Below are positions 5,557 through 51,447 of a stretch of 51,707 bases of DNA, piece after piece. Position numbers and translations under genes: made by a program. Within the stretch, counting starts at the first letter, position 1. Each line of letters opens with the position of its first letter. The notes beneath the pieces were generated by a model. The model was not told where the DNA came from. It worked only from the letters and a program-made list of their open reading frames with translations, and did no database searches. Source of the DNA: Perkinsus chesapeaki ATCC PRA-425 (lineage: Eukaryota; Protista; Perkinsozoa); assembly GCA_013115145.1 (NCBI GenBank), contig JAAPAO010000216.1, positions 1-51,707 on the forward strand, in the 5' to 3' direction.

Positions 5557-13149
<7,593 letters not shown>

Positions 13150-16757: not shown

Positions 16758-17048
16758 GATACCGCTATCGGCCTCTCACACATCGGCATTTGTTTGTTAC
16801 CACGAGTCTATATTATTCACTTATCACGATGATCGTATGGCCTACTACCACCATTCTTAGTTTAGTCTTCCCATTTTCTCTTTGTCGTAACAGCTTTGCA
16901 TCTCGCCACTCATCCTTGTACTGTTGTGTTGCTACATATTACTGTTATGATACTAGAGCGGTTGAACTACTGGGGATTAGCGTAGGCAATGCTACGGAGA
17001 ATGACGTGTTCTCTGTTGATCGATCAGCATTTCGAAAAGCGAGGGTAG

Positions 17049-17120
17049 AGGTCCTATCGGGATTCGAACCCGAGTCGCTGGATTCAAAGTCCAGAGTGCT
17101 AACCGCTACACTATAGGACC
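17049..17120 (-). tRNA. tRNA-Gln(TTG)
   Basis: Near-identical to the tRNA at 12852-12923; full cloverleaf. Confidence 0.95.
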
Positions 17121-21154: not shown

Positions 21155-21226
21155 AGGTCCTATCGGGATTCGAACCCGAGTCGCTGGATTCAAAGTCCAG
21201 AGTGCTAACCACTACACTATAGGACC
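21155..21226 (-). tRNA. tRNA-Gln(TTG)
   Basis: Third near-identical copy; full cloverleaf. Confidence 0.95.
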
Positions 21227-37312: not shown

Positions 37313-38131
37313 TGTGTTAGATAAGCAAAGGCTCATCGTACACCAAGCTCTCAAACTTCGTGCCACATCATTCGCGCTATCGGTGGTAGCCTAACTAGAC
37401 ACTCTCTAAGATATCCAACTGACTCTTTCTTTGCTAGTTTTCATATAGTGTGTGCACACAATGTAGTATCCTTCCTGTGTTTTTTGAACATGCACATGGA
37501 AGATTATCAAAGTCGTGACCATTTGTTTCCCGTTCATTGGGGTCCGACGAACGGCCGCGTCGACAGCGCTCCCGAGCTCACAAGCCCTGTCGTTACGGTA
37601 TAGCACAGCCTACTGTAGTGGCTTGCCGGGACTGTTGCTTATCAGATTTGACTCATCGGTAACAAAGGCTGCTGAGCGGCTCGCGTCTGCCCTGAACTCG
37701 ATGAAAGGCATGTGACTGTATCATTTGTGAGGTCTCGTTGCTAACCATAGAGTTGCGTTGATAAAGTGAACCACCAAAGCTGAGCGTTGTATAATGACAG
37801 AATTCACTCCCGAAGGTGCAGACTCTTCATTAGGGGCCTGTAAGGATAATCTCTCTATCAATCAGTAGCCATTCATTTCAGCTACTCTTCCCGGAGATGA
37901 GTGTATGCCACTAGAAAAGGTATCTTATCTCCAGCATCGACCGTCTATCTATTGTTGATCAGAGCCTGCTGAGCAACTTGGCCGCGGGCCATGCCAGAGC
38001 CAGGTCGCCAGTGCCCCCGTTGAAAATTCCAGCATCAGTCGCAATGCAAATGTGAACTGTGCCGTGCCCTCCAAGAAGCGTCGGGTATGCTCGTCAGGTA
38101 TGGAAGCCACCGTCCGCTCTCCTCTGACCGG

Positions 38132-38713
38132 ATGCTTGCCTCCCCTACGAACCCACCGTTTTGTGGCAACTCCTCGGCTCGTGAAATGTATACAGAGCTC
38201 TTCAGAAGGGCGGATGAGAAAATAGAAGAGCAGGCAGAGATGATAAGAAAACAACGAGAAGAGCTGGAAGAAGCCAACGAACGACTCCGACGCGTAACGG
38301 GCTTGAGTGCCCTTCCATTGGTTATTGCATCCATTCTGCAGTCATCGCGTACAGTACCGAGGCTCGAGCTAGCTGAGCGGGTGGCTGAAGAGTGCGATGA
38401 AGCCCACGAAAGGCTACATATGGCGACCGATCGCATCAGAGAGTTAGAGTCGCTGAACCGGCGGCTGGCGGAGGATCTTGCTAGTCGACGGAAGGACGGA
38501 ACAAATGGACCGACTCTCGACGTCCGGCGAGGAATGTGTTGCTTTTCAAGGGACTTTTGCAGACCACCTCGTTGTCAAGCTCGTGGTGCTCGTCTATTAT
38601 TTTCGAAAGGTTGGATGCAACACCGTATGCTATTATCATACAGAGGTCACATCCGCTTGGTATTGTCGCACTTGTGTCATCTCCGTCAGGTTCTGGAGGG
38701 GAAGGCGAGATAG
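38132..38713 (+). CDS. Hypothetical coiled-coil protein (probably spliced; ends uncertain)
   Basis: Heptad-like E/K/R-rich segments ADEKIEEQAEMIRKQREELEEANERLRR and ERLHMATDRIRELESLNRRLAEDL, separated by a likely GT-AG intron. Confidence 0.45.
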   Translation: MLASPTNPPFCGNSSAREMYTELFRRADEKIEEQAEMIRKQREELEEANERLRRVTGLSALPLVIASILQSSRTVPRLELAERVAEECDEAHERLHMATDRIRELESLNRRLAEDLASRRKDGTNGPTLDVRRGMCCFSRDFCRPPRCQARGARLLFSKGWMQHRMLLSYRGHIRLVLSHLCHLRQVLEGKAR

Positions 38714-39679
38714 ACGTGCGAGCCGATGCTGCCAACTTTGGGGAAGACTAACCCACCGAGCCCTTGCACGATCCCATCGTCGAGCTGCCTCTAATGTGTG
38801 CCCTTCTACTCAGAAAGCACAACACTACAGCAGCTTCACCGCCAATTGTGCTCTGGAAGCAACCTCCGTCCCTGCCGACCTTCCCCTGGTCAAAGGCTGC
38901 CGGCCCACTGACGGAACGCAACGACCTTTTCGGTCTGTGCATGCCTATAGGAAGGCTTTTCAAGAGCCGCTAGTGCCCAGTGGCATACCTTCGACAAGAT
39001 TGCCCGATTTGCATACAGTGGAGACTGAGGCCAGGAATCCTCATACGGTCTTCGCTACGCCTAGGACAATCACAAATAGGAAGCCTGATGGAGGATGGAG
39101 TGGCATCAGCACAAGACCATCACCAGGAATGTGTATTGCGCATTCCGAGGGCTCCGCGACGCAAAGGTCTCCTCAGGCGTGGTGCAGTCAGGTGGCGATG
39201 TTACTGAACGAGCTTCTCAAGACCGGCAACACGTGGCGGTTACACCACGGCGCGTCTATTCAGAGTGGCCCATGACAAGCCGAACTGATGTCTCCCGTAT
39301 GGCCTGGGACCGAGGCCAACTGGGCTTGTTGCCGCCCCAGTTGATGGATGTACCAGTTGCGAACCGCACTATCTGACCTCATGGCAGGGTTAGGTACGGC
39401 GAAAGCCGCGAAGTGCTCGTGCTGGAAACGCTGGTACCATTGTATCGATGAGAAGCCTCAAATTGGAGAGATGATATTTTTGCATGCTGGTGAATAATTA
39501 ATGTTTCTCTCAGACCCTGGGTCTGGCTTTCCCTACACATCTTTTCCTTTTAATTAATCAACTCAAGATGAACAAGTAATGGCCTGAACAATTTTGTTCA
39601 GTGAAATTGTCTAGTATTTTGAGAATAATAGATATGTTAAAGTGATAAATGCGTTTAGTATCTTTTGAGGCAACAAAAT

Positions 39680-40765
39680 TTACGCAGAAGCCTGCTTGGC
39701 ATTAGTCTTCTCAGACTTAGTAGTAGCAGTCTTCTTCTGACTGTTGCTCCTCTTTAGGATGCTTTGAGAGATCTTATCGAGATCCTGCTCAGCCTCCATA
39801 AGAGAGCCAACTAGCTCCTTAGCCGCATCACGGTTCTGTACCAAACCAAGGTTATCGAGAATGTCCACGAACTCTCTGGCGACGTCGTCACTGTCGGTCT
39901 TGCTCAGCTGCTTCTGAGCTTCCTTCGAGGGGACTTCGTCTTTAGCTTCGTCAATTCCCAGAATGTGGTCGGTAACACGCTGTAGATCCTCACCAGACTT
40001 CACGAGCCTTCTGACAAACCTCTCAGCATCCTCCTTCTTCTGGACGAAACCCATCTGGGTGAGAAGATCGACCATAGTGTCTTCGGCTTCCTTCTCGGAC
40101 TTCACTTCCTTCTCGATATGAACCTCCTTCGGTTTGGCAACCTGAGCTTGCTGCTTCTGCTGAACCGGCTGGACCACCTTCTTCTCTCTGGGCTTGCCAG
40201 CCTTCTGCGAGGAGGCACGCTCGGCCTGCTCTTGTGCTTGAATCTCTTGGGTCAGAACTGCAAGATCTTGACCAGCATTCAGGAGAGTGTCCACCAAACG
40301 GTAGGCGCCATCCATAGTGCTCATGAACTCAAGGTCGGTGAGGAGCTGGGCAAGAGTATCAGCAACAGTATCCTCAACGGCTTCCTCATCAGCCTTCTGC
40401 TCGGGCTGGGCTTGCTCCTTCTGCTCGGGCTGGGCTTGCTCCTTCTGCTCGGGCTGGGCTTGCTCCTTAGAAGCAGTTGTAGTGGTAGCAGGAGCATCGG
40501 TCTTAATGAAGAGGTCGAGGGTAGGAGAAGATGGCTTGCGCTCGGAAGCGAGAACCAGTGCATCACCAATAGACAAGTCGTTCAAAAGGCACATCTCATC
40601 ATCGTCATCGATATAGTAGACGCGATAGTCGGTACCTTTCAACTCGGGCCAGGCTTGCTCGATATAGTCGTGGATTTGACACAAGTCTTGGCAAGCGTCA
40701 ATGGTGGTGCGGACACGTAGAGTCTGCAATGTAGTACGGAGCTTGAGAATAAGATCACTAGCCAT
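39680..40765 (-). CDS. PB1-like + 3x UBA-like repeat protein, paralog 1 (361 aa, intronless)
   Basis: Clean single ORF. N-terminal LILKL...YYIDDDDEMCLLND...TLDLFIK fits PB1 (basic Lys plus OPCA-like acidic loop). Three ~40-aa repeats, one with MGF. Confidence 0.88.
   Translation of the reverse strand: MASDLILKLRTTLQTLRVRTTIDACQDLCQIHDYIEQAWPELKGTDYRVYYIDDDDEMCLLNDLSIGDALVLASERKPSSPTLDLFIKTDAPATTTTASKEQAQPEQKEQAQPEQKEQAQPEQKADEEAVEDTVADTLAQLLTDLEFMSTMDGAYRLVDTLLNAGQDLAVLTQEIQAQEQAERASSQKAGKPREKKVVQPVQQKQQAQVAKPKEVHIEKEVKSEKEAEDTMVDLLTQMGFVQKKEDAERFVRRLVKSGEDLQRVTDHILGIDEAKDEVPSKEAQKQLSKTDSDDVAREFVDILDNLGLVQNRDAAKELVGSLMEAEQDLDKISQSILKRSNSQKKTATTKSEKTNAKQASA
40393..40468 (-). repeat. 24-bp in-frame tandem repeat x3 (KEQAQPEQ)
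   Basis: CCTTCTGCTCGGGCTGGGCTTGCT repeated three times in the linker of paralog 1. Confidence 0.9.
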
Positions 40766-41522
40766 AGTGTATTAGTAACGATTAAGAAAAATCTAATTTG
40801 GAGTTGAGTGAGTCTTTTCAGCCAGTCGGCCAAGTTTCAGCGCAACACAATGTCGCTACGAAGCGCTACAAATTGCGCAAAGGTCGTACTTCATGTTTTT
40901 CAGTAAAACACGATTCAGGCTAGAAAGTTAATCGTAAGCGATTGTCAGGGATCTTATGAAGCTCATCAGGAAGCCTTAGGGGGCGTAAGAAGACTAGCAA
41001 TCTGCTTCATGATTGGTGAATTGGTTTATCTGTGGAGGGGACAAGTTGTGTGCCAAGGGACATTTTTTGTGTCGAGGGTTTGTCACCTCAAGCTGCAATT
41101 TGTAAGGAAGATGTATCCTGATCTGGGTCCCTTCAGAACTTGATCCGTTACTACATCGCTCTCTTATCGCAGCTCAACTGCAAAGCGCTGCTCGATGCCA
41201 TCCAAGATACAATGGCGAGTTGTCCACATTGTCGCCGACCATATTGTCACAACATTATTGTGACCGTGCCTTCTTTTCCCTTTCTCAAACCCTGCCGGTC
41301 TCGAAGCCACTACACCTGTTTGATTGAATAGTTCTCAACTACACCATGGGTGTTCTCTCATTATCCACCAGTTAAACAATCAGTGATTGAAGTGTTGATT
41401 GCCACAAGCGTTAGTAACCACGCAACACTTTCCTGACCCTTTCGATTCAAAAGTATTTGAAATCTAGACAATGAGTTTCTCATAATTAAATTATATTGGT
41501 ATTATATCTACTATAGTCAAGT

Positions 41523-42572
41523 TCACTGCGACAAGCTCTTCTGAACAGTCGAACTATTTGACAGTCTTTTAGAGAGATCATCAAGATCAGCCTGAGTAGC
41601 CATTAGAGCACTGACGAGTTCTCTTGCAGCGGCCTTGTTCTGAATGAATCCGAAATCACTGAGCATGTCGACGAAGTTTCTTGCTAGTGGATCAGCTTGA
41701 ACATTCTGAAGCTCCTTCGTCTCATCCTCAACTTCCTTAGTATCCTTCTTGGCATCAGCCTTCTCGTAACCCATCAGGCGATCAGCAACCTTCTGCATGC
41801 TTGACAAGTTGTCGAACATGTTGTTGACAAGCTCCTCGCCGCTCTTCTTGTCACTGACAAATCCAGACTTGTTCAAGAAGTCGGCCATTGCATCTTTAGC
41901 CTCCTTCTCGGAAGACACTCCCTTCTCCATATGCATCACCTTGGGCTCAGAGCCTGATTGCTGGACAGCCTTCTCACAGCTAACGCTGACCTCAGGCTTT
42001 TCCTGCGAAGTAGCAACCTCCTTTTGAGCAGCGTCGTTCTCCTTTTCAACAGAGGGCTCTTCTTTCTTGTCGACGACGGCCTCCCCTTCTTTCTTCTCGA
42101 CCTTCTGCTCCTTCTTAGCCTTCAATGAATCGGCAACCTTGGCCATATCCTGATCAGCAGCCGCCAAACTGTCAACCAAACGCAATGCGGCGAAAGGATC
42201 AGTGACATAGTCCAAATCGTCGAGCAAATCAGCAACCATGAGAGCAGTGGGGTCCAATGGAGTAAAGCTAGGCTGTTCACCTCCCTTAACGTCCACGTAG
42301 ATATCCAATACAGGGACAGTATTAGAGATCCTGCCCCTAGCATCAGCAACTGCCAAAGCATCAGGGAGAGAGAGGTCGTTCAGTAGACACATCTCACCTA
42401 CGTTGTCCAAGTAGAAGAGGCGATAGTCGCGGAACTGAAGTTCACGCCAGGCCTTTTCCACAAAACCACAGAGCTGCTCGTAGGTCTGGCACTGTTCGGG
42501 ATCGACTCTAACACGGATTGTCTCCGAATCAGAGTGCAACTTAAGGCATAGAACACTTGCGATAGATGACAT
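41523..42572 (-). CDS. PB1-like + 3x UBA-like repeat protein, paralog 2 (349 aa)
   Basis: LCLKL...FYLDNVGEMCLLND...PVLDIYVD followed by three helical repeats. Intronless. Confidence 0.88.
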   Translation of the reverse strand: MSSIASVLCLKLHSDSETIRVRVDPEQCQTYEQLCGFVEKAWRELQFRDYRLFYLDNVGEMCLLNDLSLPDALAVADARGRISNTVPVLDIYVDVKGGEQPSFTPLDPTALMVADLLDDLDYVTDPFAALRLVDSLAAADQDMAKVADSLKAKKEQKVEKKEGEAVVDKKEEPSVEKENDAAQKEVATSQEKPEVSVSCEKAVQQSGSEPKVMHMEKGVSSEKEAKDAMADFLNKSGFVSDKKSGEELVNNMFDNLSSMQKVADRLMGYEKADAKKDTKEVEDETKELQNVQADPLARNFVDMLSDFGFIQNKAAARELVSALMATQADLDDLSKRLSNSSTVQKSLSQ

Positions 42573-43018
42573 ATTTAAACGATCAATGAATTCAATAAAC
42601 TGAACAGACCAGTTAATCGTATCACACTCTTCCCCAAAACGATATCAGAATGTTTGCGTCTAATCTGATTCAACCCGCATTAGCGGTGCTTCGTTGCTGG
42701 CTGATATGGGGTGAGAATAGCTCTTAGCGGTCTGACCCGCGCTTTAACACAACATCACACAAGTCGTAGCACAACAACCTGTCCCCTCTCGATGTTCTGG
42801 ATAGGTGCTGTTCACAAAGTCGTGGAGAAGGGTCACCCTTTGTAAGCCCCGTTACACTGATGGGAAGATCACGCTCATTTAGAATGAGAATGCCGTAGTG
42901 AGTATTCTGGCATTGTAGACTCCTGTTGGTTCTAAATTGGCTTCCTCTTCGACACCAGGGTTGAGATTTAGTGGTAACACTTTCTTTTTAGACGTTCTTC
43001 GTGTGAATATGGTGTAAC

Positions 43019-43074
43019 ACTCAACTCTTTTGACGATTCGTCAAAAGAGTTGAGTCTTCGTCAATGACGAAGAC
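43019..43074. repeat. Two abutting near-perfect palindromes
   Basis: 18-bp arms at 43019-43036 and 43038-43055; 10-bp arms at 43054-43063 and 43065-43074. Each has a 1-nt centre. Confidence 0.9.
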
Positions 43075-43521
43075 AGGCTGTTTTAAACAAGAGTTCGTAT
43101 AGAAAGGCACGCATGTAGCTAGACGCTACCAAGGACACGTTATGTGGTGTGGTAATGCGCATCGAGGACGAAATTACTCTGACGGATGAGCTACAGAAGC
43201 GTCAATCGGGCCTATTAGCAGTCGTAATCATCCAATACTTGCCCGCGGCCGGATGTCTGTGTGCCTCTTTCGATGCACTTCGCGTGAGTTTAGTAAGTGT
43301 GTGTCCGAGTCTTCTCTAACCAAGTTTACACAGTTTTACAGGCTACTGCACATTGCTAATATTTGAGACAAGAAGTATGCTCACCTACAATAGCCCACTC
43401 CAATCCCCACTACAAGCTGCGCAACACTTGCCCGGTTATTTCGATTCAAAAGTATTTGAAATCTAGACAATGAGTTTCTCACAATTAAATTATATTGGTA
43501 TTATATCTACTATAGTCAAGT

Positions 43522-44571
43522 TCACTGCGACAAGCTCTTCTGAACAGTCGAACTACTTGACAGTCTTTTAGAGAGATCATCCAGATCAGCCTGAGTAGCC
43601 ATTAGAGCACTGACGAGTTCTCTTGCAGCGGCCTTGTTCTGAATGAATCCGAAATCACTGAGCATGTCGACGAAGTTTCTTGCTAGTGGATCAGCTTGAA
43701 CATTCTGAAGCTCCTTCGTCTCATCCTCAACTTCCTTAGTATCCTTCTTTGCATCAGCCTTCTCGTAACCCATCAGGCGATCAGCAACCTTCTGCATGCT
43801 TGACAAGTTGTCGAACATGTTGTTGACAAGCTCCTCGCCGCTCTTCTTGTCACTGACAAATCCAGACTTGTTCAAGAAGTCGGCCATTGCATCTTTAGCC
43901 TCCTTCTCGGAAGACACTTCCTTCTCCATATGCATCACCTTGGGCTCAGAGCCTGATTGCTGGACAGCCTTCTCGCAGCTAACGCTGACCTCAGGCTTTT
44001 CCTGCGAAGTAGCAACCTGCTTTTGAGCAGCATCGTTCTCCTTTTCAACAGAGGGCTCTTCTTTCTTGTCGACGACGGCCTTCTCTTCTTTCTTCTCAGC
44101 CTTCTGCTCCTTCTTAGCCTTCAATGAATCGGCAACCTTGGCCATATCCTGATCAGCAGCCGCTAAACTGTCAACCAAACGCAATGCTGCGAAAGGATCA
44201 GTGACATAGTCCAAGTCGTCGAGCAAATCAGCAACCATGAGAGCAGTGGGGTCCAATGGAGTAAAGCTAGGCTGTTCACCTCCCTTAACGTCCACGTAGA
44301 TATCCAATACAGGGACAGTATTAGAGATCTTGCCCCTAGCATCAGCAACTGCCAACGCATCAGGGAGAGAGAGGTCGTTCAGTAGACACATCTCACCGAC
44401 GTTGTCCAAGTAGAAGAGGCGATAGTCGCGGAACTGAAGTTCACGCCAGGCCTTTTCCACAAAACCACAGAGTTGCTCGTAGGTCTGGCACTGTTCGGGA
44501 TCGACTCTAACACGGATTGTCTCCGAATCAGAGTGCAACTTAAGGCATAGAACACTTGCGATAGATGACAT
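43522..44571 (-). CDS. PB1-like + 3x UBA-like repeat protein, paralog 3 (349 aa), recent duplicate of paralog 2
   Basis: Seven amino-acid differences from paralog 2; offset 1999 nt. Confidence 0.88.
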   Translation of the reverse strand: MSSIASVLCLKLHSDSETIRVRVDPEQCQTYEQLCGFVEKAWRELQFRDYRLFYLDNVGEMCLLNDLSLPDALAVADARGKISNTVPVLDIYVDVKGGEQPSFTPLDPTALMVADLLDDLDYVTDPFAALRLVDSLAAADQDMAKVADSLKAKKEQKAEKKEEKAVVDKKEEPSVEKENDAAQKQVATSQEKPEVSVSCEKAVQQSGSEPKVMHMEKEVSSEKEAKDAMADFLNKSGFVSDKKSGEELVNNMFDNLSSMQKVADRLMGYEKADAKKDTKEVEDETKELQNVQADPLARNFVDMLSDFGFIQNKAAARELVSALMATQADLDDLSKRLSSSSTVQKSLSQ

Positions 44572-45131
44572 ATTTAAACGATTAATGAATTCAATAAACT
44601 GAACAAAATGACGCGTGCCAATGATACTCTTACTTCTAGACTAACTCCTCATCAACAAACCCACAGTTACTAATAGAATGACAGTAACTGACAGCTTTAA
44701 CGAGAATAGCTTGTAGCGTTTTGATTCCCGCTTAGATACACAACGTCACACAATTATCTGTCTCCTCGGGAGAATCCCTGCGGGGATACCGCCTGAAGTC
44801 CATCTGACGGAGTTTGCCGAACGTGGCTCCTAACTAACGTAGTCTTGTTGGGTGATAAGCAAGTACACTCCTGCGATTCCAGCTCACGGAGTGGCAAGGC
44901 ATGTAGAGATAATAGCCTTACCAGTTCCACAACTGTCTCCACGTACGAGTATCTTGCGCGTCGTCGTGTTAATGTCCCCGTTTTCAGCTACAATACAGCT
45001 AGAACCCACGTGAACACGCCGAGTTTATTGTTCTACCTCTAGGTGGTGTTGTAGTAACTAGTTCTCATTGAGAGACTTCGATAGCTGTTTTACAGTCTCA
45101 ATTGAATTTTCTTTCATAAATACTAATAATA

Positions 45132-46238
45132 ATGTCAAGTGATCTTATTCTAAAGCTTCGTACAAGAACACAAACTATGAGGGTCAGAGTTGCCTCTGAG
45201 AAGTTGACTGATATGTGTCAAATCAAAGACTTCATTGAGAAGGCCTGGACTCAGTTGCAGGGCAAGCAGTATCGCGTGTACTATGTCGATGAGTTCGGCG
45301 AGATGTGCGTCTTGAACGACTTGTCTCTTGGTGATGCTATCGCAACTGTTAGAGAACAGGCTGCTGCTCTCGACATTACTCCTGTGTTGGACTTATACAT
45401 TCAAGACGAGGGTGAGGAAGTTCCACTATCATCTACCGCTCCTGAGGAAAACATCGCTCAAGAGGTTGATGTAGCTGATACTCTTGCACAGTTGTTGGAT
45501 GACATGGACTTCATGGACAGTATCGATGCCGCTGAGCAATTCGTTGATGGTTTGGTGGCAGCTAACTCCGACTTGGATGCCATACTCGGCCACTTGCGAG
45601 GTGAAAACAGCCCTATACAACGGAGGGCTGTTCCCGCTAGTGCTCCTGCTAAGTCTCTTGCGGCTCCTGAGAAGAAGTCCACGAAAGCCGTGCAGAAGGC
45701 TGCCAAGCCCTCTAAGGAGCCATCTACTACTGGCGAGATAGAAGCCAGCGGGTACGAGCAAGTTGGTGACAAGGCACCCAAGCAGTTCCATGTTGAGAGA
45801 CAGGTGTCTTCTGCGAAGGAGGCGTCTGATATGATGGTTGACCTTCTCTCGAAGATGGGCTTTGTCAATAGCAAGAAGGACGCCCAGGACCTCGTTGCCC
45901 AGCTCACTAGTGGTCCGGAGGATCTACAGAGAGTTGCGGATCATATTGAGGACTTGGTAGAAGGCAGAGAGCCTACTGTTATGGATGGTACTGCCAAACA
46001 GTTCATCGATATGCTGAACGACACTGGTGCGGTTCAGGACAGGGATGCTGCCGAGGACCTTGTGGGTGCATTGGTGGACGCTGAGCAAGATGTAGACAAG
46101 GTCTTCAACAACTTCTTGGAAAGAACCAATTCCAAGCAAGAACAGAAGGCTATTCAGCAGCCTCGGAAGTCTACGAGGAGGTCACATCGCAGTCGCCGTT
46201 CTTCCAGAAAGCAACAGGCCGCTCAAACCTCCGCGTAA
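45132..46238 (+). CDS. PB1-like + 3x UBA-like repeat protein, paralog 4 (368 aa)
   Basis: LILKL...YYVDEFGEMCVLND...PVLDLYIQ, repeats including LLSKMGFV, and an Arg/Ser-rich tail. Confidence 0.88.
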   Translation: MSSDLILKLRTRTQTMRVRVASEKLTDMCQIKDFIEKAWTQLQGKQYRVYYVDEFGEMCVLNDLSLGDAIATVREQAAALDITPVLDLYIQDEGEEVPLSSTAPEENIAQEVDVADTLAQLLDDMDFMDSIDAAEQFVDGLVAANSDLDAILGHLRGENSPIQRRAVPASAPAKSLAAPEKKSTKAVQKAAKPSKEPSTTGEIEASGYEQVGDKAPKQFHVERQVSSAKEASDMMVDLLSKMGFVNSKKDAQDLVAQLTSGPEDLQRVADHIEDLVEGREPTVMDGTAKQFIDMLNDTGAVQDRDAAEDLVGALVDAEQDVDKVFNNFLERTNSKQEQKAIQQPRKSTRRSHRSRRSSRKQQAAQTSA

Positions 46239-46853
46239 GTGCGTAGTTCCTTTATTTTTATACTCCAACTTATAAAATACTCATTCGGTGATATGACTTT
46301 GATTGCGGGATATATATTCCCATGAATTCCCATGTAATTGTTGTGTTGATAGCTATTAACTTGATACAAATCTAATAGTATTGGACTTTAAGAAGCCCTT
46401 CCCTGGGAGGGTATCGGAATGCGCTTCGAAAGTTGGCGGTGGCCTATGCGGTGTATGTTAACTATCCTGTTCTGATAACTCCGATAATTCAAAACATCCG
46501 ATAATTCCAGTATCTGGTATGAGAGATGTTCCCGTTCCCGAGAGCAACCCTCGGTAAGCTAGTGACAGTAGCACGTGCTCCACTTCCTGAGTCTAGGCAC
46601 TTACCTCCGGAGGATTATCTAGTGTAAACTGTTTAGGCATGAGAACCGGTCAATCGATCGTTGGCACCCGTAACTGGCCCATCCGGCCCCAGCGCGCCTA
46701 ATATAGCAAGCTGAAATGCGTGCGCAATTAGCACCGGATTCCTTCTTCTTGGGTCTGGAATCTATGAAGTGTATCAGTAGGACAGCTATTTGCTCTATCC
46801 TGCATTTACACCGCAATGTATCATCTCTACAGGAATTATCAAATTAGTTGTAA

Positions 46854-46874
46854 GTCGCTATCGTCTAGCGGTTA
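46854..46874 (+). pseudogene. Truncated tRNA-His 5' fragment
   Basis: GTCGCTATCGTCTAGCGGTTA matches 47538-47558 except one base, then diverges. The upstream flanks are also homologous. Confidence 0.65.
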
Positions 46875-47201
46875 TGGTTAAAGCCTGAGACAATCGCTAG
46901 CTCCGTATGTGCAGATATCAGGAAGAATGAGTCTCGGGCTAGGCCTTTCCGCTTTGGACTGGCGATGGCCTACTCAATGAGGTACTGTAGACTGATTGAA
47001 CTTCTATGCATCAAACCTTTGGCCACGCAGGGTAATGATTAGTGGATTCCCATACTACTAGATAGGCGGGCGGAGAGTTTAGTAGATCACTTCTACCGGG
47101 TAAACTTTTTGGGGCGACGAACTTGCTGGCGTGCGGCATCGTGTCACGCTGCGTCGCTGACATGGAGCGGACGAGCTGTACATACTAAGTAATCACATAT
47201 A

Positions 47202-47274
47202 GCCCAGATAGCTCAGTTGGGAGAGCGCCAGACTGAAGATCTGGAGGTCCTCAGTTCGATCCTGGGTCTGGGCA
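47202..47274 (+). tRNA. tRNA-Phe(GAA)
   Basis: GCCCAGATAGCTCAGTTGGGAGAGCGCCAGACTGAAGATCTGGAGGTCCTCAGTTCGATCCTGGGTCTGGGCA; intact cloverleaf. Confidence 0.96.
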
Positions 47275-47537
47275 TCTTCCTATGCCTGTCGTATGGTTGT
47301 CTGGTTCAAATTGTTCAGGCATGGAAAGCTGTCAATCGATTGGCGGAGCCCGTGACTGTCTTTCAACCCCAGCGCGCCAGAAACGAAAAATTCGTGCGCA
47401 CATCGCACTAGCTTGGTTCTTCATGTGTCTGGCGTTGAGGGTGCTACTTGTGTTAGTGGGACAGCTATATTCTCCACCATGTATGCATTGTATACGGCTA
47501 TGTATCGTCTTCACAAGATTTCTAAAACTAGTAGCAA

Positions 47538-47609
47538 GTCGCTATCGTCTAGTGGTTAGGACGTCACGTTGTGGCCGTGACAACCCCGGTTCAAATCCGG
47601 GTAGTGACT
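47538..47609 (+). tRNA. tRNA-His(GTG)
   Basis: Acceptor GTCGCTA/TAGTGAC, anticodon arm TCACG-TTGTGGC-CGTGA, T arm CCCGG-TTCAAAT-CCGGG. Confidence 0.95.
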
Positions 47610-48023
47610 TTATTTCCAAATTTATGTATAGTTCCAGACATAACCTGAAGGCTGGGTAGAAAACAGCAGTCTGATATATCTACAATTATCGTGGAAACTA
47701 AAACAACCACCAGCTCTGTGCATGCAGACATCTGAAAGAGGGAGTCTTTCGCGATGCATTTCCGCTCAGACCGGCGATCGTGCGCCCGATGAATTATACT
47801 AACTGACCTACGTAGATGCATTAGACCTTTGGCTCTGCGGGTTTTTGATCAATGAGACTCCATACTACTAGATAGGCGGGTGGAGGGTTGGTTATTTTGC
47901 TTTTACCGGGCGGACTTTTCGGAGCAACGAAATTGGTGGCGTGCGGCATTGAGTGTAACCATTTGTCACACTGCGTCTCAGACACGGAGCGCGCGAGTAG
48001 TACACACCGAACTAGTAGATGTA

Positions 48024-48096
48024 TCCCAGATAGCTCAGGCGGGAGAGCGCCGGACTGAAGATCTGTAGGTCCTGAGTTCGTTCTTGGATCTAGGCA
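48024..48096 (+). pseudogene. tRNA-Phe(GAA) pseudogene
   Basis: Full-length copy of 47202-47274 with mismatches in the acceptor stem (T-C, C-A), a disrupted T stem and an altered T loop (TTCGTTC). Confidence 0.8.
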
Positions 48097-48706
48097 TTTC
48101 ACATTGAGAGTTGTTATTTGGACCTCCCGGAGGGTTCATATGCGGTAGCTCCACTCATGCATTCTAACTAGCGGGGTGGTGAATCGAGCGCTACGAATGA
48201 ATGCTCAGCTCGCATCCCAAACTGTGATTTTAGGTGCATAGCCGCCGGCTGCGGCCAACCAACTTCACCTGCTCCATAATGTTCTTATATTCGAGCTGAT
48301 TATGCTCTAAAGTGCTCTGCCGGAAGGGACGGGCAAGGAAGTCGTAACCTGTTAATTGCACAGACATGCCGCATGCACGCAGCACGCCTCCTGGCACATA
48401 ACCTTTAACCTATACTTATGTGTCAACCTCTATGAAAAAAACGTACTAAAGCTTAACCTATTCTATTGGAATATGGTAGTCATGCACTCATAAACACTTC
48501 CGAACACTCCCTGGCTTGTTAATCACTTCCACAAGAACAACCTCATCTTAACGCAACATATGTTTTTTAAACGCTGAGGCTACTCAGACATTATGACACT
48601 GACGATAGCTTGGCTTAGAGAATAAAATTCATCACGGCAGTAGTGTTTCATAACTATGAATGGTATATTAAACTATGAATGTAAAAACATAAAATGGTCG
48701 AATAGC

Positions 48707-49864
48707 TTAGTCAAGCAAATCAACATGATCGGCCTTAGGATCGCGCGGATGCTTCGGTGCAGCCCAACCCCAACGAGGTTCTGTGGCCTGCATCGTGCGT
48801 CCAGACTTCCTCTGCTTCCTTTCATATCTCTTCACCTGCTTAGCAATGCATCTCTTAGCTCCTGCATCTTGCTGAGCTTGCTGCTCTTCGGGAGTAAGCA
48901 ATGGCTTCCTGTAGATGGGCTTGGAAGGACCGTGAATGAAGTGGTAGAGGATACTATCCAAATCCTGACCAGTAGCTTCAAGAGCATCAACCAGCTCATC
49001 AGCGCTCTTCTTGTTGGAAACGAAACCGTAGTCGTTGAGGAGCTTAGCAAGTCGTTTGCCGCTCTTTTCATTCTCCTCTCCACCTTCGGCCTTCTTCATA
49101 TCCATCGCGTCTTCTGACTCTGCCTTCTCCGCGCGGTGCTGCTCGTCGGCCCATCTCTTGATATGATCAGTAACCTGGTCTAGAGCACCAGTAGAAGGAA
49201 CGAGCTTCTTCACAAGCTCACGAGCGGCCTTCTTGCTATCAACAAAGCCGAGACCGGTAAGAAGATCTACCATGGTATCGATGGCTTCTTGCTCGTCAGA
49301 GACCTCTCTCTGAATCTTCAGTGGCTTGGTCTGCTTCTTGGCGGCCTTATGGGCAATGGCCTTGGTGGGCTTCTTCGCAGCAATCTTCTTGGCAGGTTGC
49401 TTCTTCGAGACTGGCTTTTCAGCCTTAGTCTTCATAAGCTCATCAGCGACCGCGTCCAAATCCTGACCAGCAGACTGGAGAACTTCTGCAAGCTCCTGTG
49501 CCATGGCAAAGCTTGGTATCATATCAAGATCAACAAGCTCATCCACAACACGGGACAAAGGATCCTCCACGATGACATCAGTCTCCTCCTCATCTTCGTC
49601 AACGGGTTGTACGTAGATGTTGAGAGTAGGCACTACAGACTCCTCGGCTAGAAGCAGAGCGTCCGCCAACGACACCTGGTTAAGAACGCATGCGTCGTCC
49701 AAGTCATCGATGTAGTAGAGCTGGTAAGGTATCTCCTTCAGATCGGGCCAGGCCATCTCTACATAACTGCAGATCTCTTCCATCTTCTCACATTTCTCAA
49801 ACGGGGCTCTCACTCGGAGGATGTCCGAATCGAGATGGAGTTTCAAACAGATTTCACTTGACAT
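48707..49864 (-). CDS. PB1-like + 3x UBA-like repeat protein, paralog 5 (385 aa)
   Basis: ICLKL...YYIDDLDDACVLNQ...PTLNIYVQ, repeats including LLTGLGFV and LLNDYGFV, and a unique basic C-terminal tail. Confidence 0.88.
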   Translation of the reverse strand: MSSEICLKLHLDSDILRVRAPFEKCEKMEEICSYVEMAWPDLKEIPYQLYYIDDLDDACVLNQVSLADALLLAEESVVPTLNIYVQPVDEDEEETDVIVEDPLSRVVDELVDLDMIPSFAMAQELAEVLQSAGQDLDAVADELMKTKAEKPVSKKQPAKKIAAKKPTKAIAHKAAKKQTKPLKIQREVSDEQEAIDTMVDLLTGLGFVDSKKAARELVKKLVPSTGALDQVTDHIKRWADEQHRAEKAESEDAMDMKKAEGGEENEKSGKRLAKLLNDYGFVSNKKSADELVDALEATGQDLDSILYHFIHGPSKPIYRKPLLTPEEQQAQQDAGAKRCIAKQVKRYERKQRKSGRTMQATEPRWGWAAPKHPRDPKADHVDLLD

Positions 49865-50412
49865 ATTAGTATTTAAAAAAAGAACGATTCAATATCTAAA
49901 ATACAATACAAACAAAAAATCTCTGACAATAGATTCATTATCATCGTCCTTTATTTAAGTTCCGAATGTAGAGTAGCAATGAGAATCTTCACCAGCACAG
50001 CCACAGCGTGCAGATGCACGCTTGTGACGCGCTGTCCCCCTGCCTACCATCGGAACGGAGAAAGGTGTAATCATCCCAAAGCTCCGAGCTTCTGGTATGC
50101 ACTAGTGCTCTTTCATCACTACTCTTGCTTTAAGTTAGGACTAGCTTGACGCTTGCGTCGGAGCGATCAGACTGAGGAACGATACGGCTTGGTAGACGCC
50201 AAAACGTATCCTGCGCCGCTTTGTTGCGCATCTTCAGCTTTGCGTCGGCTGGAGTTGTCCCGAAAAGATCGCTCTTCAACGAAATCATTAACAAACTGAA
50301 CAAGCTTCGTGGCGGGCTCATATAACGATAATCATTCTATTGTTTAAATATTATCTATTAATGCTTATGCTTCCAGTTATTTTGTTTTTAAATACTTTAT
50401 TCGTTATCGATT

Positions 50413-51447
50413 ATGTCCAGTGAGTTATGCCTCAAGTTCCATTTGGGCTATCAGGTCCTTCGTGTGCGTGTCAACCCTTCTGATTGCCAAACAGCATCTC
50501 AGTTGAGTGAGTACATTGAAAAGGCCTGGCCTCAGCTGCAGGGTGCGGTCTATCGTCTATTCTATACCGATGAGTCCGGCGAGATGTGTGTCTTGAACGA
50601 TCTCTCAATCGGAGATGCTATGAGCACCGCCGAGGAGGCCGCCAAGAAGTCAAACACCACACCGGTGTTGGATGTCTATGTGAAGGTCGATGGTGATGAG
50701 GACGAAGAGTCTGTGTCAGCTGCTCAGACTGCCACTGACTTGTTGAATGATTTGGATCTGATGACTGATCCTTATTATGCTCAACAGTTGGTGGACAGTT
50801 TAGTAGAGACTGGTCAGGACGTTGACAAGTTTGCTGATACATTGCAGACTAAGAAGGATCAACAGCAGAAGGTCGCTGCTAAGAAGCCATCTCTTGCACA
50901 GCGTATTGCTAACAAGTTCCATCCTGCTAAGAAGGAGGAAGCTGCTACTAAGGATTCCTCCAAGCCGCAGATGCAAGTCAGCTTTGATCAGACTGTTGAT
51001 AATGGTTCCGGTGCACCGAAGACTTCTCACTTTGAGAAGAATGTTTCCTCGGAAAAGGAGGCTAAGGATGCTATGGCTGATTTCTTAAAGAAGTCTGGTT
51101 ATACCAGCAACGAGAAGACTGCTGAGGACTTGGTTAACAGACTTTTTGGTCCCAGATCTGATTATTCTGGTTTCGAGAAGTTTGCCGACAATCTTCTAGA
51201 CTACGGTGATGCAAGCAAAGATGAGAAGAAGGCCGCTAAGAAGTCCTCCGATCTTCGTGCTTTGGATACCGATCAGTCAGCTAAGCAGTTTGCTGATATG
51301 CTTAATGACTTTGGCTTCGTCGACAACAGCACTGCTGCTCGTGAACTGACTAGCGCATTGATGGCCGCCCAGCAAGATCTCGATCAGATCGAGAAGAACT
51401 TCGCGGTTGAAACTGCTGCTGAGAAGGCTCAGAACAAGAGCAACTAA
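50413..51447 (+). CDS. PB1-like + 3x UBA-like repeat protein, paralog 6 (344 aa)
   Basis: LCLKF...FYTDESGEMCVLND...PVLDVYVK followed by three repeats. Closest to paralogs 2 and 3. Confidence 0.88.
   Translation: MSSELCLKFHLGYQVLRVRVNPSDCQTASQLSEYIEKAWPQLQGAVYRLFYTDESGEMCVLNDLSIGDAMSTAEEAAKKSNTTPVLDVYVKVDGDEDEESVSAAQTATDLLNDLDLMTDPYYAQQLVDSLVETGQDVDKFADTLQTKKDQQQKVAAKKPSLAQRIANKFHPAKKEEAATKDSSKPQMQVSFDQTVDNGSGAPKTSHFEKNVSSEKEAKDAMADFLKKSGYTSNEKTAEDLVNRLFGPRSDYSGFEKFADNLLDYGDASKDEKKAAKKSSDLRALDTDQSAKQFADMLNDFGFVDNSTAARELTSALMAAQQDLDQIEKNFAVETAAEKAQNKSN

Follow-up and report, generated by a model that had tools for sequence, protein, structure and literature searches.

The window analyzed here, the whole 51,707 nucleotides of contig JAAPAO010000216.1 from Perkinsus chesapeaki, a mollusc parasite, contains an array of six paralogous genes whose products combine an N-terminal PB1 domain with three small helical modules. 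We tentatively interpret these proteins as Perkinsus-specific p62-like PB1 adaptors that are soluble, strongly acidic, organized like beads on a string, and equipped with divergent UBA-like modules.

Gene Array and Conservation

All six ORFs are intact and intronless, and they encode proteins of 344-385 residues, each comprising one N-terminal domain of ~90 residues followed by three repeats of about 44-45 residues. This is the layout described in the initial annotation, and the repeat sequences that it quoted for the first paralogue (W1) were all found verbatim. When the entire window was scanned in all six frames, six N-terminal domains and 18 repeats were recovered, with no further copies, a regularity that is far beyond chance. 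The local amplification proposed earlier is upheld. The paralogues can be aligned end to end with 35-44% identity to W1, the fastest-evolving of the six, and Lys8, Arg17, Val18, Arg19, Tyr51, Asp53, Cys59, Leu61, and Asn62 are invariant. W3 is a recent duplicate of W2 (97.8% nucleotide identity across 1186 nt). The coordinates of all features are listed in Table 1.

The six ORFs are real genes: contigs of P. chesapeaki and of the P. marinus type contain their orthologues and preserve the gene order, and dN/dS values of 0.10-0.22 reflect purifying selection. W2 has 89% amino acid identity with its P. chesapeaki orthologue, and W4 is 90% identical to P. chesapeaki FOL47_004984. The public gene model P0014 excises repeat 2 of W5 as a 96-nt predicted intron. 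None of the six proteins contains a transmembrane segment (the highest Kyte-Doolittle value for a 19-residue stretch is 1.19) and, because the PB1 domain begins at about residue 4, there is no signal peptide, in agreement with the initial annotation. A profile of the six proteins matched just 35 proteins among 1.84 billion representatives, including true NBR1 homologues (P0035 and P0038, PB1-ZZ-NBR1_Ig-UBA) as well as Pfam-positive PB1 proteins. On the basis of this profile survey, the family with a PB1 domain and three repeats is restricted to the genus Perkinsus, where it is syntenic across species, and the architecture is not that of a described family, as had been suspected.

Table 1. Positions of the genes and their domains in the window
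Feature	Position	Strand	Evidence or remark
W1 gene, 361 aa	39680..40765	-	PB1 + R1 + R2 + R3
W1 PB1	40487..40765	-	PB1 HMM E 1.5e-32; AF2 pLDDT 79-90; Foldseek NBR1 TM 0.79
W1 perfect 24-nt x3.2 tandem repeat, PB1-R1 linker	40393..40468	-	encodes KEQAQPEQ x3
W1 repeat 1	40220..40378	-	HMM E 4.4e-16; loop L-E-F, no Gly
W1 repeat 2	39941..40099	-	HMM E 3.9e-21; loop M-G-F-V; unit modelled by AF2
W1 repeat 3	39737..39895	-	repeat HMM; loop L-G-L-V
W2 gene, 349 aa	41523..42572	-	ORF + paralogue alignment
W2 PB1	42276..42572	-	PB1 HMM
W2 repeat 1	42102..42260	-	repeat HMM
W2 repeat 2	41754..41912	-	repeat HMM
W2 repeat 3	41541..41699	-	repeat HMM
W3 gene, 349 aa	43522..44571	-	ORF; duplicate of W2
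W3 PB1	44275..44571	-	PB1 HMM
W3 repeat 1	44101..44259	-	repeat HMM
W3 repeat 2	43753..43911	-	repeat HMM
W3 repeat 3	43540..43698	-	repeat HMM
W4 gene, 368 aa	45132..46238	+	ORF; basic Arg/Ser-rich tail (+10)
W4 PB1	45132..45419	+	PB1 HMM
W4 repeat 1	45459..45614	+	repeat HMM; dN/dS 0.06
W4 repeat 2	45810..45968	+	repeat HMM; dN/dS 0.03
W4 repeat 3	45978..46136	+	repeat HMM; dN/dS 0.05
W5 gene, 385 aa	48707..49864	-	ORF; long basic tail, conserved RWGWA...VDLLD end
W5 PB1, net charge -15	49592..49864	-	PB1 HMM
W5 repeat 1	49415..49573	-	repeat HMM
W5 repeat 2	49139..49297	-	repeat HMM
W5 repeat 3	48917..49075	-	repeat HMM
W6 gene, 344 aa	50413..51447	+	ORF
W6 PB1	50413..50700	+	PB1 HMM
W6 repeat 1	50707..50865	+	repeat HMM
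W6 repeat 2	51049..51216	+	repeat HMM; 3-residue insertion ahead of helix 3
W6 repeat 3	51265..51423	+	repeat HMM

The N-terminal Domain

Fold and profile together identify the N-terminal domain, almost certainly, as a divergent and cryptic PB1 domain; even with the threshold relaxed to E<=10, Pfam misses PB1 in every member of the array. Residues 1-90 of the AF2 model have the topology ββαββαβ, and the best Foldseek match is the PB1 domain of NBR1 (2bkf, rmsd 2.3 Å), with the PB1 domains of Par6, aPKC, p67phox, and p62 among the other top matches; a fold search of AFDB-SwissProt is headed by NBR1 and JOKA2. The PB1 assignment of the initial annotation is borne out. The PB1 profile A3 matches the PB1 domain of PKCζ (5e-4), NBR1 (1.4e-3), and AtNBR1 (1.9e-3), in alignments that place Lys8 opposite the canonical lysine and the Y-x-D-x-x-G-[DE]-x-C sequence opposite the OPCA motif. 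The basic face, comprising the β1 lysine that had been pointed out previously and an arginine in β2, is retained in the family. The acidic OPCA motif is complete only in W1, where the core is D-D-D-D-E; the other five lack the middle acid and keep two of the three core acids.

The Repeat Modules

The repeat HMM detects exactly three units per protein, with E values from 1e-12 to 1e-21. The AF2 model of repeat 2 of W1, obtained with a 45-sequence repeat alignment, has a pLDDT of 86.6 and helices at residues 2-15, 22-35, and 39-52, and the repeat is thus very probably a three-helix bundle, as the initial annotation predicted. In repeat 2 the loop is strictly conserved as [MLS]-G-[FY]-V, whereas it varies freely in repeats 1 and 3, and in repeat 1 the glycine is replaced by Asp, Glu, or Asn.

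For the further proposal that the repeats are UBA-like there are several leads, but UBA identity is not established. Pfam detects no UBA in any of these proteins at thresholds up to E<=10, and the repeat profiles A2, A4, and A5 reach no UBA or CUE chain in the PDB at the same threshold. UBA and CUE domains head two independent Foldseek lists for the repeat model, in which every match has E>1 and reflects generic fold similarity, and in a second look with VIA-align ANTAR scored 4.4-4.8 versus only 2.2 for USP5 UBA2. Comparison by hhalign with a UBA profile whose performance had been confirmed on UBAs from the PDB gave 65% (P 5.9e-5). The alignment spans 36 columns, has the expected register, and is colinear across all three helices, and none of 300 column shuffles matched the score. 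Block permutation indicates, however, that an 11-column block comprising helix 1 and MGFVD supplies ~18.6 of the score of 22.8; when the comparison is restricted to the two UBAs that Pfam verifies, the score drops to 11.3 (P 0.049), and the best single template, P0053, is itself not demonstrably a UBA. The repeats resemble the UBA and CUE domains of the Pfam UBA clan in being three-helix bundles of similar order, in the hydrophobic-Gly-Phe/Tyr loop that joins the first two helices of repeat 2, and in an Asp-Leu N-cap at helix 3 that is aligned with the G-D-[MI] of UBA, but their helices, of ~14 residues, are roughly one turn longer. Language-model neighbours include PB1+CUE, SQSTM1 UBA_5, and UBL7-UBA clusters. 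Taken together, evolutionary derivation from UBA has slightly less than an even chance of being correct, and the binding of ubiquitin or a ubiquitin-like protein, which is a prediction, is somewhat more doubtful.

Circumstantial support for a UBA-like identity comes from Perkinsus proteins with a PB1-ZZ-ZZ architecture (PMAR011080 and PMAR011078 of P. marinus, FOZ60_012015 and FOZ61_002069 of P. olseni) whose sole annotation is ZZ-type domain-containing or hypothetical. Their PB1 domains are of the same subtype (profile E 9e-29, ~36% identity) and have the A-W-P-x-L and G-D-x-C-x-L motifs in common with those of the window. The C termini of PMAR011080, FOZ60_012015, and FOZ61_002069 match the repeat HMM at 1e-19 to 3e-21 when two of these PB1-ZZ-ZZ proteins are included in building it, and an HMM from the window repeats alone matches the PB1-ZZ-ZZ C termini at 2e-7 to 4e-9. 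The module is nearest to repeat 3, sharing the sequence NLGLVQNRDAA with that of W1. These relatives have two ZZ fingers and a single module, located at the position of the UBA in p62 and NBR1, in contrast to the window proteins, which have three modules and, as annotated initially, no ZZ domain by Pfam. This position, and the retrieval of NBR1 homologues by the family profile, show that the p62/NBR1-type relationship put forward earlier is real.

In a competing interpretation, which we consider somewhat less likely than the p62-like reading, the PB1 scaffold would be the same but the modules would constitute a lineage-specific interaction domain unrelated to ubiquitin, with a convergent M-G-F-like loop. 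The modules might then dock particular clients or further proteins of the Perkinsus PB1 network, or regulate the PB1 domain intramolecularly, an effect reported for the contact between PB1 and UBA in Joka2. The failure of UBA and CUE sequence models, the shrinkage of the hhalign signal to a short motif, the variable loops of repeats 1 and 3, and the acidity of the modules (net charge -1 to -10 each) are in keeping with such a domain, but the location of the module in the PB1-ZZ-ZZ proteins, the order of the Foldseek lists, and the colinear register with UBA are not.

Proposed Function

In the p62-like adaptor model, front-to-back association of the PB1 domains, both among themselves and with the many other PB1 proteins of Perkinsus, would yield homo- or hetero-oligomers in which the multiplied helical modules, three per protein, would present a binding surface of high avidity. 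These modules most likely represent UBA-like domains that have diverged greatly, and repeat 2, by virtue of its strict loop, would be the best candidate for binding ubiquitin or a ubiquitin-like modifier, so that the family could act as a p62-like collector or scaffold of ubiquitylated material. A direct link to ATG8 is unsupported because no conserved LIR is detectable in the six proteins.

The charge pattern and linkers would also suit polyampholytes with no specific ligand, which would phase separate through PB1 association and charge patterning and form condensates or act as buffers in a structural or stress-protective role. Whole-protein net charge is -17 to -22, the acidic modules alternate with basic stretches (+4 to +10 in the first linker, up to +10 in the tails), and the linkers are disordered, low in complexity, and rich in Lys, Glu, and Gln, including the perfect repeat in W1. 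Such a role is unlikely: dN/dS is lowest in the repeats, at 0.03-0.06 as compared with 0.2-0.3 in the linkers, and their position-specific motifs are kept across species, which argues for specific binding surfaces.

Less likely still is a monomeric shuttle like Rad23, Dsk2, or Ddi1, in which the β-grasp domain would dock the proteasome or another machine while the three modules capture substrates; the layout and length are those of Rad23, the full-length model has a pTM of only 0.30 and hence domains that behave as independent beads, and S. pombe rhp23 is aligned over residues 4-358 (E 1.3e-3, AFDB-SwissProt) with DDI1 also listed, but the TM-scores to rhp23 are just 0.18, UBX and UBL domains rank below PB1 domains, to which the β-grasp belongs by profile and rank, and both the lysine and OPCA faces of PB1 are retained.

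Comparison with Known Systems

The Rad23, Dsk2, and Ddi1 proteins share with the window family an N-terminal β-grasp domain, small helical domains on flexible linkers, and a size of about 350-400 residues, but the N terminus of the latter is a PB1 rather than a UBL domain, and STI1/XPC-binding and protease domains are absent. Among language-model neighbours, the one closest to the repeat region is an oomycete PB1+CUE cluster (~365 residues, ESM Atlas; score 0.55), a lead without an alignment. It is similar in length and also combines PB1 with a UBA-clan domain, and it was absent from the results of the exhaustive profile search of the 1.84 billion representatives. A single NBR1 is typical of non-metazoans (PMC9582228), in contrast to the many tandem paralogues found here. 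The window family also differs from p62/SQSTM1 and NBR1 in having neither a ZZ nor an FW/NBR1 domain nor a detectable LIR, and in having three helical modules, none of which is recognized by any UBA model. Plant NBR1/Joka2 has two C-terminal UBA domains. The NBR1-like kind of N-terminal PB1 domain is the best structural and profile match of the family, AtNBR1 and p62 have PB1 domains with both the lysine and OPCA faces, and a long disordered middle region followed by small C-terminal helical domains is common to both groups. The family seems to be a new and expanded relative of the p62/NBR1-type adaptors, with putative ubiquitin binding.

Organization and Conservation of the Array

The array consists of six intact open reading frames, W1 to W6, whose products (344-385 aa) align end to end with 35-44% identity to W1 and share the invariant residues K8, R17, V18, R19, E36, A38, W39, Y51, D53, C59, L61, and N62. 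Three repeat units (R1, R2, and R3) are found in each protein by a repeat HMM, with E values from 1e-12 to 1e-21, and scanning all 51.7 kb of the window in six frames gave just six N-terminal domains and 18 repeats, without any degenerate extra copy. The six genes with three repeats apiece described in the initial annotation are therefore all present, and the repeat sequences that it quoted occur verbatim. Antisense ORFs of 120-200 aa that lie over the genes, of which the table gives examples, were rejected as genes. The rest of the window outside the array has no ORF of 200 aa or more and has scattered tRNA genes, which point to a eukaryote. The first ORF of the overlapping pair listed upstream of W1 has a coiled-coil-like stretch rich in Glu, Arg, and Leu.

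Positions of the array genes and of other features in the window
Feature	Position	Strand	Remark
tRNA-Gln(TTG)	12852-12923	-	Three copies at ~4.1-4.2-kb spacing
tRNA-Gln(TTG)	17048-17120	-	
tRNA-Gln(TTG)	21155-21226	-	
Two overlapping ORFs	38087-39275	+	208 aa and 265 aa, just upstream of array
W1 gene	39680-40765	-	Intact ORF
Antisense ORF	40118-40720	+	Low-complexity mirror frame
Tandem repeat in W1	40393-40468		Perfect, 24 nt x 3.2; KEQAQPEQ x3, linker from PB1 to repeat 1
W2 gene	41523-42572	-	Intact ORF
W3 gene	43522-44571	-	Intact ORF
W4 gene	45132-46238	+	Intact ORF
Antisense ORF	45458-45907	-	Low-complexity mirror frame
tRNA Phe-GAA	47202-47274		W4-W5 gap
tRNA His-GTG	47537-47610		W4-W5 gap
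tRNA Phe-GAA	48025-48095		W4-W5 gap; ARAGORN only, below Rfam threshold
W5 gene	48707-49864	-	Intact ORF
Basic tail of W5	48707-48790		Conserved in W5 lineage
'Intron' in public model of W5	49172-49267		96 nt, in frame
Antisense ORF	49289-49651	+	Low-complexity mirror frame
W6 gene	50413-51447	+	Intact ORF

The closest database matches of the W proteins are Perkinsus proteins, every one named 'hypothetical'; W4, for example, has 90% identity to P. chesapeaki FOL47_004984, 71% to its P. olseni counterpart, and 58-63% to those of P. marinus. The window genes differ from their orthologues in the P. chesapeaki assembly by a dS of 0.2-0.5 and so are not simply alleles of them, and dN/dS is 0.10-0.22 in comparisons with the P. 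chesapeaki and P. marinus-type orthologues. In W4 the constraint is strongest in the repeats, where dN/dS is 0.03-0.06 as compared with 0.2-0.3 in the linkers. The gene order of the array is conserved between species: P. chesapeaki contig JAAPAO010000280 has a 388-aa member (+), a W2/3 orthologue (-), and a W4 orthologue (+), and a P. marinus-type contig has W2/3 (-), W4 (+), and W5 (-). Constraint and synteny together rule out the reading that these ORFs are not genes, and the constraint suggests that they are transcribed.

A maximum-likelihood tree contains well supported orthogroups for W4, W2/3, W6, and W5, with W6 as sister to W2/3; W1 lies on a long branch weakly joined to the group of PMAR012026 and the 388-aa P. 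chesapeaki member, and FOZ61_003435 represents a further divergent lineage. Five to six paralogue lineages are therefore older than the split between the species sequenced. The W2-W3 pair arose by recent duplication (97.8% nucleotide identity over 1186 nt, dS 0.05).

The 2.5-kb gap between W4 and W5 is filled by a cluster of three tRNA genes; on the P. marinus-type contig (L003) this gap is absent and ~1 kb separates W4 from W5. On JAAPAO010000280 the W4 orthologue is followed downstream (L001, 13488-18445) by a MAPEG gene and a multi-exon gene for a 442-aa protein with a weak Pfam CUE match, and the presence of the tRNAs, W5, and W6 at this place in the window marks a synteny break. The CUE-flagged protein has no repeat HMM match and is unrelated to the array. 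Elsewhere, the regular spacing of the tRNA-Gln(TTG) genes suggests a tandemly repeated unit of ~4 kb.

The N-terminal PB1 Domain

The Pfam PB1 model (PF00564) matches none of the six proteins at E<=10, either in full length or trimmed. An AF2 model built on the six-sequence alignment nevertheless has a bbabbab fold over residues 1-90, with pLDDT of 79-90, and PB1 domains head its Foldseek list from the PDB. These include NBR1 (2bkf, TM 0.79, 2.3 A), Par6-aPKC (1wmh, TM 0.78-0.82), p67phox/p40phox, and p62 (6jm4, TM 0.72); UBX, UBL, and FERM lobes rank below them. JOKA2 and NBR1 are at the top of the corresponding AFDB-SwissProt list. When a profile of the six proteins was compared with 1.84 billion representatives, only 35 proteins were matched. 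Those outside the family comprise further Perkinsus PB1 proteins, a single dinoflagellate PB1 protein, and two NBR1 homologues with the arrangement PB1-ZZ-NBR1_Ig-UBA (P0035 and P0038, at 1e-5 and 2e-4), and the matches include proteins that are Pfam-positive for PB1. A PB1 profile of 19 sequences (A3) matches solved PB1 domains, namely those of PKCzeta (5e-4), human NBR1 (1.4e-3), and AtNBR1 (1.9e-3). The fold, the exhaustive profile search, and the matches to solved structures agree, and the N-terminal domain is therefore a cryptic PB1.

Residue K8 is invariant in all 19 aligned PB1s and corresponds to the canonical beta1 Lys of PKCzeta (VRLKAHY) and AtNBR1 (LVVKVSY); human NBR1, a type-A PB1, has Asn at the equivalent position. 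The segment Y51-x-D53-x-x-G/D56-E/D57-x-C59 matches the OPCA motif residue for residue, the PKCzeta sequence being W-V-D-S-E-G-D-P-C. With the OPCA core defined as D-x-D/E-x-D/E (PMC7051960), the acids at D53 and position 57 are kept in all six paralogues. The middle acid, at position 55, is present in W1 only and is replaced by V, F, L, or S in the other five; the downstream acids D63 and D68 are mostly kept. By this pattern W1 would be of type AB, with two faces, and the other five would have a complete basic face and a weakened acidic one. The beta-grasp PB1 with its beta1 Lys proposed in the initial annotation thus holds for the whole family, and the OPCA core of the acidic face that it also proposed is full in W1 and lacks its middle acid in the other paralogues. 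From the established behavior of PB1 domains, front-to-back oligomerization would be expected.

Anatomy of the W Proteins

In the full-length model pTM is 0.30 and the linkers have pLDDT below 50, so that the W proteins are modeled as independent beads on a string. Their net charge is -17 to -22, with the acidic PB1 and modules alternating with a basic linker 1 (+4 to +10 in four lineages) and with basic tails in W4 (+10) and W5 (+8). As noted from the sequence at the outset, they have neither a signal peptide nor a TM segment. The copies of the 24-nt repeat in W1 are 100% identical, which indicates a very recent expansion.

The W5 lineage has a conserved basic tail specific to it (R-W-G-W-A...P-K-H-P-x-D-P-K-A-D-x-V-D-[LI]-L-D at the end), which also forms the C terminus of the public protein P0020. 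A second public protein, P0014, is W5 without residues 200-231, the annotated intron having deleted the core of repeat 2. The orthologues from P. marinus and P. chesapeaki keep repeat 2, so that this intron is probably an annotation artefact; less probably, it is a real alternative splice. P0020 itself (P. chesapeaki KAF4666346.1, 626 aa, 'kelch-like') has BTB-BACK, the last PB1 strand, and the three repeats of a W5 orthologue, and probably results from merged annotation, with most of the PB1 skipped; a real gene of this form would fuse a BTB like that of cullin-3 adaptors to the triple module.

Fold of the Repeat Module and Its Similarity to UBA Domains

The repeat module was modeled by AF2 from 45 non-redundant repeat units taken from all family members (alignment A2). 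The model is a single domain (pLDDT 86.6, pTM 0.65) with helices at 2-15, 22-35, and 39-52, and the unit is thus predicted to fold as a three-helix bundle. Pfam searches of the whole proteins and of the 45 isolated repeats gave nothing below E 0.02; CUE (0.046) and PUB (0.026) each reached two of the 45 repeats below threshold, and were rejected as noise together with other sub-threshold matches in the whole proteins, PB1 regions, and repeats (DUF3038, RHA1_ro05818_N, DEP, and LpxC). In the PDB, neither the profile of the full repeat set nor those restricted to repeat 2 or to repeat 3 matched a UBA or CUE chain at E<=10. The best matches, with profiles A1, A2, and the single-position profiles A4 and A5, were to EsxB, RecX (E 0.12), S100-A16, and MotA, all non-significant; RecX also has a triple three-helix repeat, yet is absent from the structural searches. 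All Foldseek matches of the repeat model have E>1, the highest ranked being the ubiquilin-1 UBA in the PDB and the Def1 CUE domain in AFDB-SwissProt, and a shape search of the ESM Atlas gave equally generic matches. Language-model neighbors of the repeat region fall in PB1+CUE, SQSTM1/UBA_5, UBL7-UBA, and XPC-binding clusters, with low scores that serve as leads only.

A further comparison was made with a small UBA profile (A6) built from the C-terminal domains of four PB1-ZZ/NBR1-type proteins. This profile recovers the UBAs of NBR1 (6e-7), Dsk2, ubiquilins 1, 2, and 4, UBL7, Ddi1, and p62, and is valid as a UBA profile on that account. The repeat profile aligns to it in hhalign over 36 columns with 65.4% probability (P 5.9e-5) and in the register expected, the M-G-F loop falling on the M-G-F loop and the Q-D-L start of helix 3 on G-D-[MI], with a four-residue gap that accounts for the longer helix 2 of the repeat. 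The score is attained by none of 300 column-shuffled templates (mean 7.5, maximum 18.0), and reversed templates and the PB1 profile give 6.5 and 8.7. Permutation of helix blocks, which keeps the helical periodicity, leaves 18-19 of the 22.8 score, and the 11-column block of helix 1 and MGFVD by itself gives 18.6; a template limited to the two UBAs verified by Pfam scores 11.3 (P 0.049). The best single template was the C-terminal domain of P0053, which was set aside as a bridge to UBA because its own UBA identity is not demonstrable. The similarity between repeat and UBA thus appears genuine as far as the hallmark loop motif goes, and is insufficient as proof of homology. Of the UBA-like bundles originally proposed, the three helices stand in the model and a recognizable UBA or CUE match does not.

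The three positions differ in the loop between helices 1 and 2. In repeat 2 it is [MLS]-G-[FY]-V in nine of nine sequences, and in repeat 3 x-G-x-V in seven of nine; in repeat 1 it is hydrophobic-[DEN]-aromatic, Asp, Glu, or Asn replacing the Gly in eight of nine. If any unit binds ubiquitin in the manner of a UBA, repeat 2 would be the prime candidate, and repeat 1 has probably diverged in function.

Relationship to PB1-ZZ-ZZ Proteins of Perkinsus

Through its PB1, the family profile matches Perkinsus PB1-ZZ-ZZ proteins (P. marinus PMAR011080 and PMAR011078; P. olseni FOZ60_012015 and FOZ61_002069) at E 9e-29. Their C-terminal region is matched in turn by a repeat HMM made from the window alone (2e-7 to 4e-9) and by a later repeat model (1e-19 to 3e-21). 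The ZZ fingers and a disordered stretch precede the single module, which occupies the position of the UBA in p62 and NBR1. It is nearest to repeat 3 (mean identity 25-27% as compared with 18-22% for repeats 1 and 2), and NLGLVQNRDAA is common to it and to repeat 3 of W1. This module is the strongest circumstantial tie of the family to p62/NBR1. Among the repeats of the family, identity is higher within a position (0.33-0.45) than between positions (0.24-0.27), and triplication therefore predates the radiation of the paralogues. The simplest history would start from an ancestor of NBR1/p62 type with the layout PB1-(ZZ)-module, which lost the ZZ, triplicated the module, and was then multiplied in tandem.

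Homology searches found PB1-ZZ-ZZ, PB1-Cys-rich, and PB1-OB proteins in other Perkinsus genomes, which fits a genus-wide expansion of one PB1 subtype. In P. olseni a PB1-ZZ-ZZ gene adjoins another PB1 gene of this subtype (FOZ60_012015/FOZ60_012016); in P. marinus two PB1-ZZ-ZZ copies (PMAR011078/PMAR011080) are two genes apart, and one contig carries both a PB1 gene of the Cys-rich type and a triple-module member (PMAR012011/PMAR012026). In three P. olseni proteins, P0027, P0047, and P0029, an OB-fold (tRNA_anti-codon-like) domain accompanies a PB1 of this subtype; the name '60S acidic ribosomal protein P1' given to two of them seems to reflect a mis-annotation or a merged gene model.

Possible Function

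The reading that we tentatively favor is that the W proteins are adaptors in which the PB1 domains polymerize and each subunit presents three divergent UBA-like modules, so that ubiquitin or UBL conjugates would be captured with high avidity within an expanded Perkinsus PB1 network. A direct link to ATG8 is not supported: no linker contains a LIR of the form acidic-[WFY]-x-x-[LIV], the only matches to this pattern being inside the repeat helices of W2 and W3.

The main alternative, possible if somewhat doubtful, is that the same PB1 scaffold carries a lineage-specific interaction domain unrelated to ubiquitin. On this question the absence of UBA and CUE matches in Pfam and the PDB stands beside the loop motif aligned by hhalign, and the module would in that case be a new interaction domain on a polymerizing scaffold. 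If the module binds ubiquitin, as in the adaptor reading, it would be a new type of ubiquitin-binding domain in an independently expanded, combinatorial adaptor system.

Unlikely, on our assessment, is a broader proposal in which the module is an unrecognized ubiquitin/UBL-binding family, whether an extreme offshoot of UBA or invented independently, and Perkinsus has an independent p62-like system. More than 12 PB1 proteins (the triple-module family and the PB1-ZZ-ZZ-module, PB1-OB, and PB1-Cys-rich proteins) would co-polymerize through two-faced PB1s into mixed filaments or condensates, and subunit composition would set cargo selectivity. If true, a protist would have its own analogue of p62 bodies, outside Metazoa. 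That the W proteins are ligand-less polyampholytes or condensate proteins is improbable.

Comparison with Known Adaptors

A search of the literature library found nothing on the P. marinus locus tags or on Perkinsus PB1, PB1+CUE, or PB1+UBA proteins, and the database members of the triple-module family, all unnamed, come only from Perkinsus marinus, P. olseni, and P. chesapeaki. A PB1 followed by three unclassified three-helix modules is therefore an undescribed architecture, as the initial annotation had supposed, and the taxonomic survey that it proposed confines the family to these three species in the databases. In a eukaryote-wide survey of PB1 domains, SAR has only the Kinase, NBR1, and CBS families (PMC7051960); p62 is confined to metazoans, and most non-metazoans have a single NBR1 (PMC9582228).

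A genus of mollusc parasites thus has a conserved, selected multi-gene PB1 family that is invisible to standard domain models. The arrangement is new in having three modules and no ZZ, and the module also takes the place of the UBA in Perkinsus PB1-ZZ proteins. Whether or not the module binds ubiquitin, these results provide an annotation for dozens of 'hypothetical' Perkinsus proteins and a testable entry into the proteostasis of a commercially important shellfish pathogen.

A monomeric shuttle like Rad23 is very improbable: rhp23 aligns weakly over the whole length, but Rad23 and Dsk2 have an N-terminal UBL, whereas the W proteins are PB1-type by profile and by structural rank. PB1-UBA adaptors, p62 and NBR1 among them, are the archetype for the collection of ubiquitylated cargo. 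The W proteins, judged by the features of p62/NBR1 receptors (PMC9582228), share the PB1 domain, carry C-terminal modules that are candidate ubiquitin-binding domains, and are without LIR, ZZ, and FW; Pfam gave no match to ZZ or N_BRCA1_IG (the FW/NBR1 domain) in the six proteins at E<=10, and each has only 2-5 Cys, which agrees with the ZZ-less architecture first described. The undescribed architecture is still built from a known kind of part, and it resembles the known adaptors.
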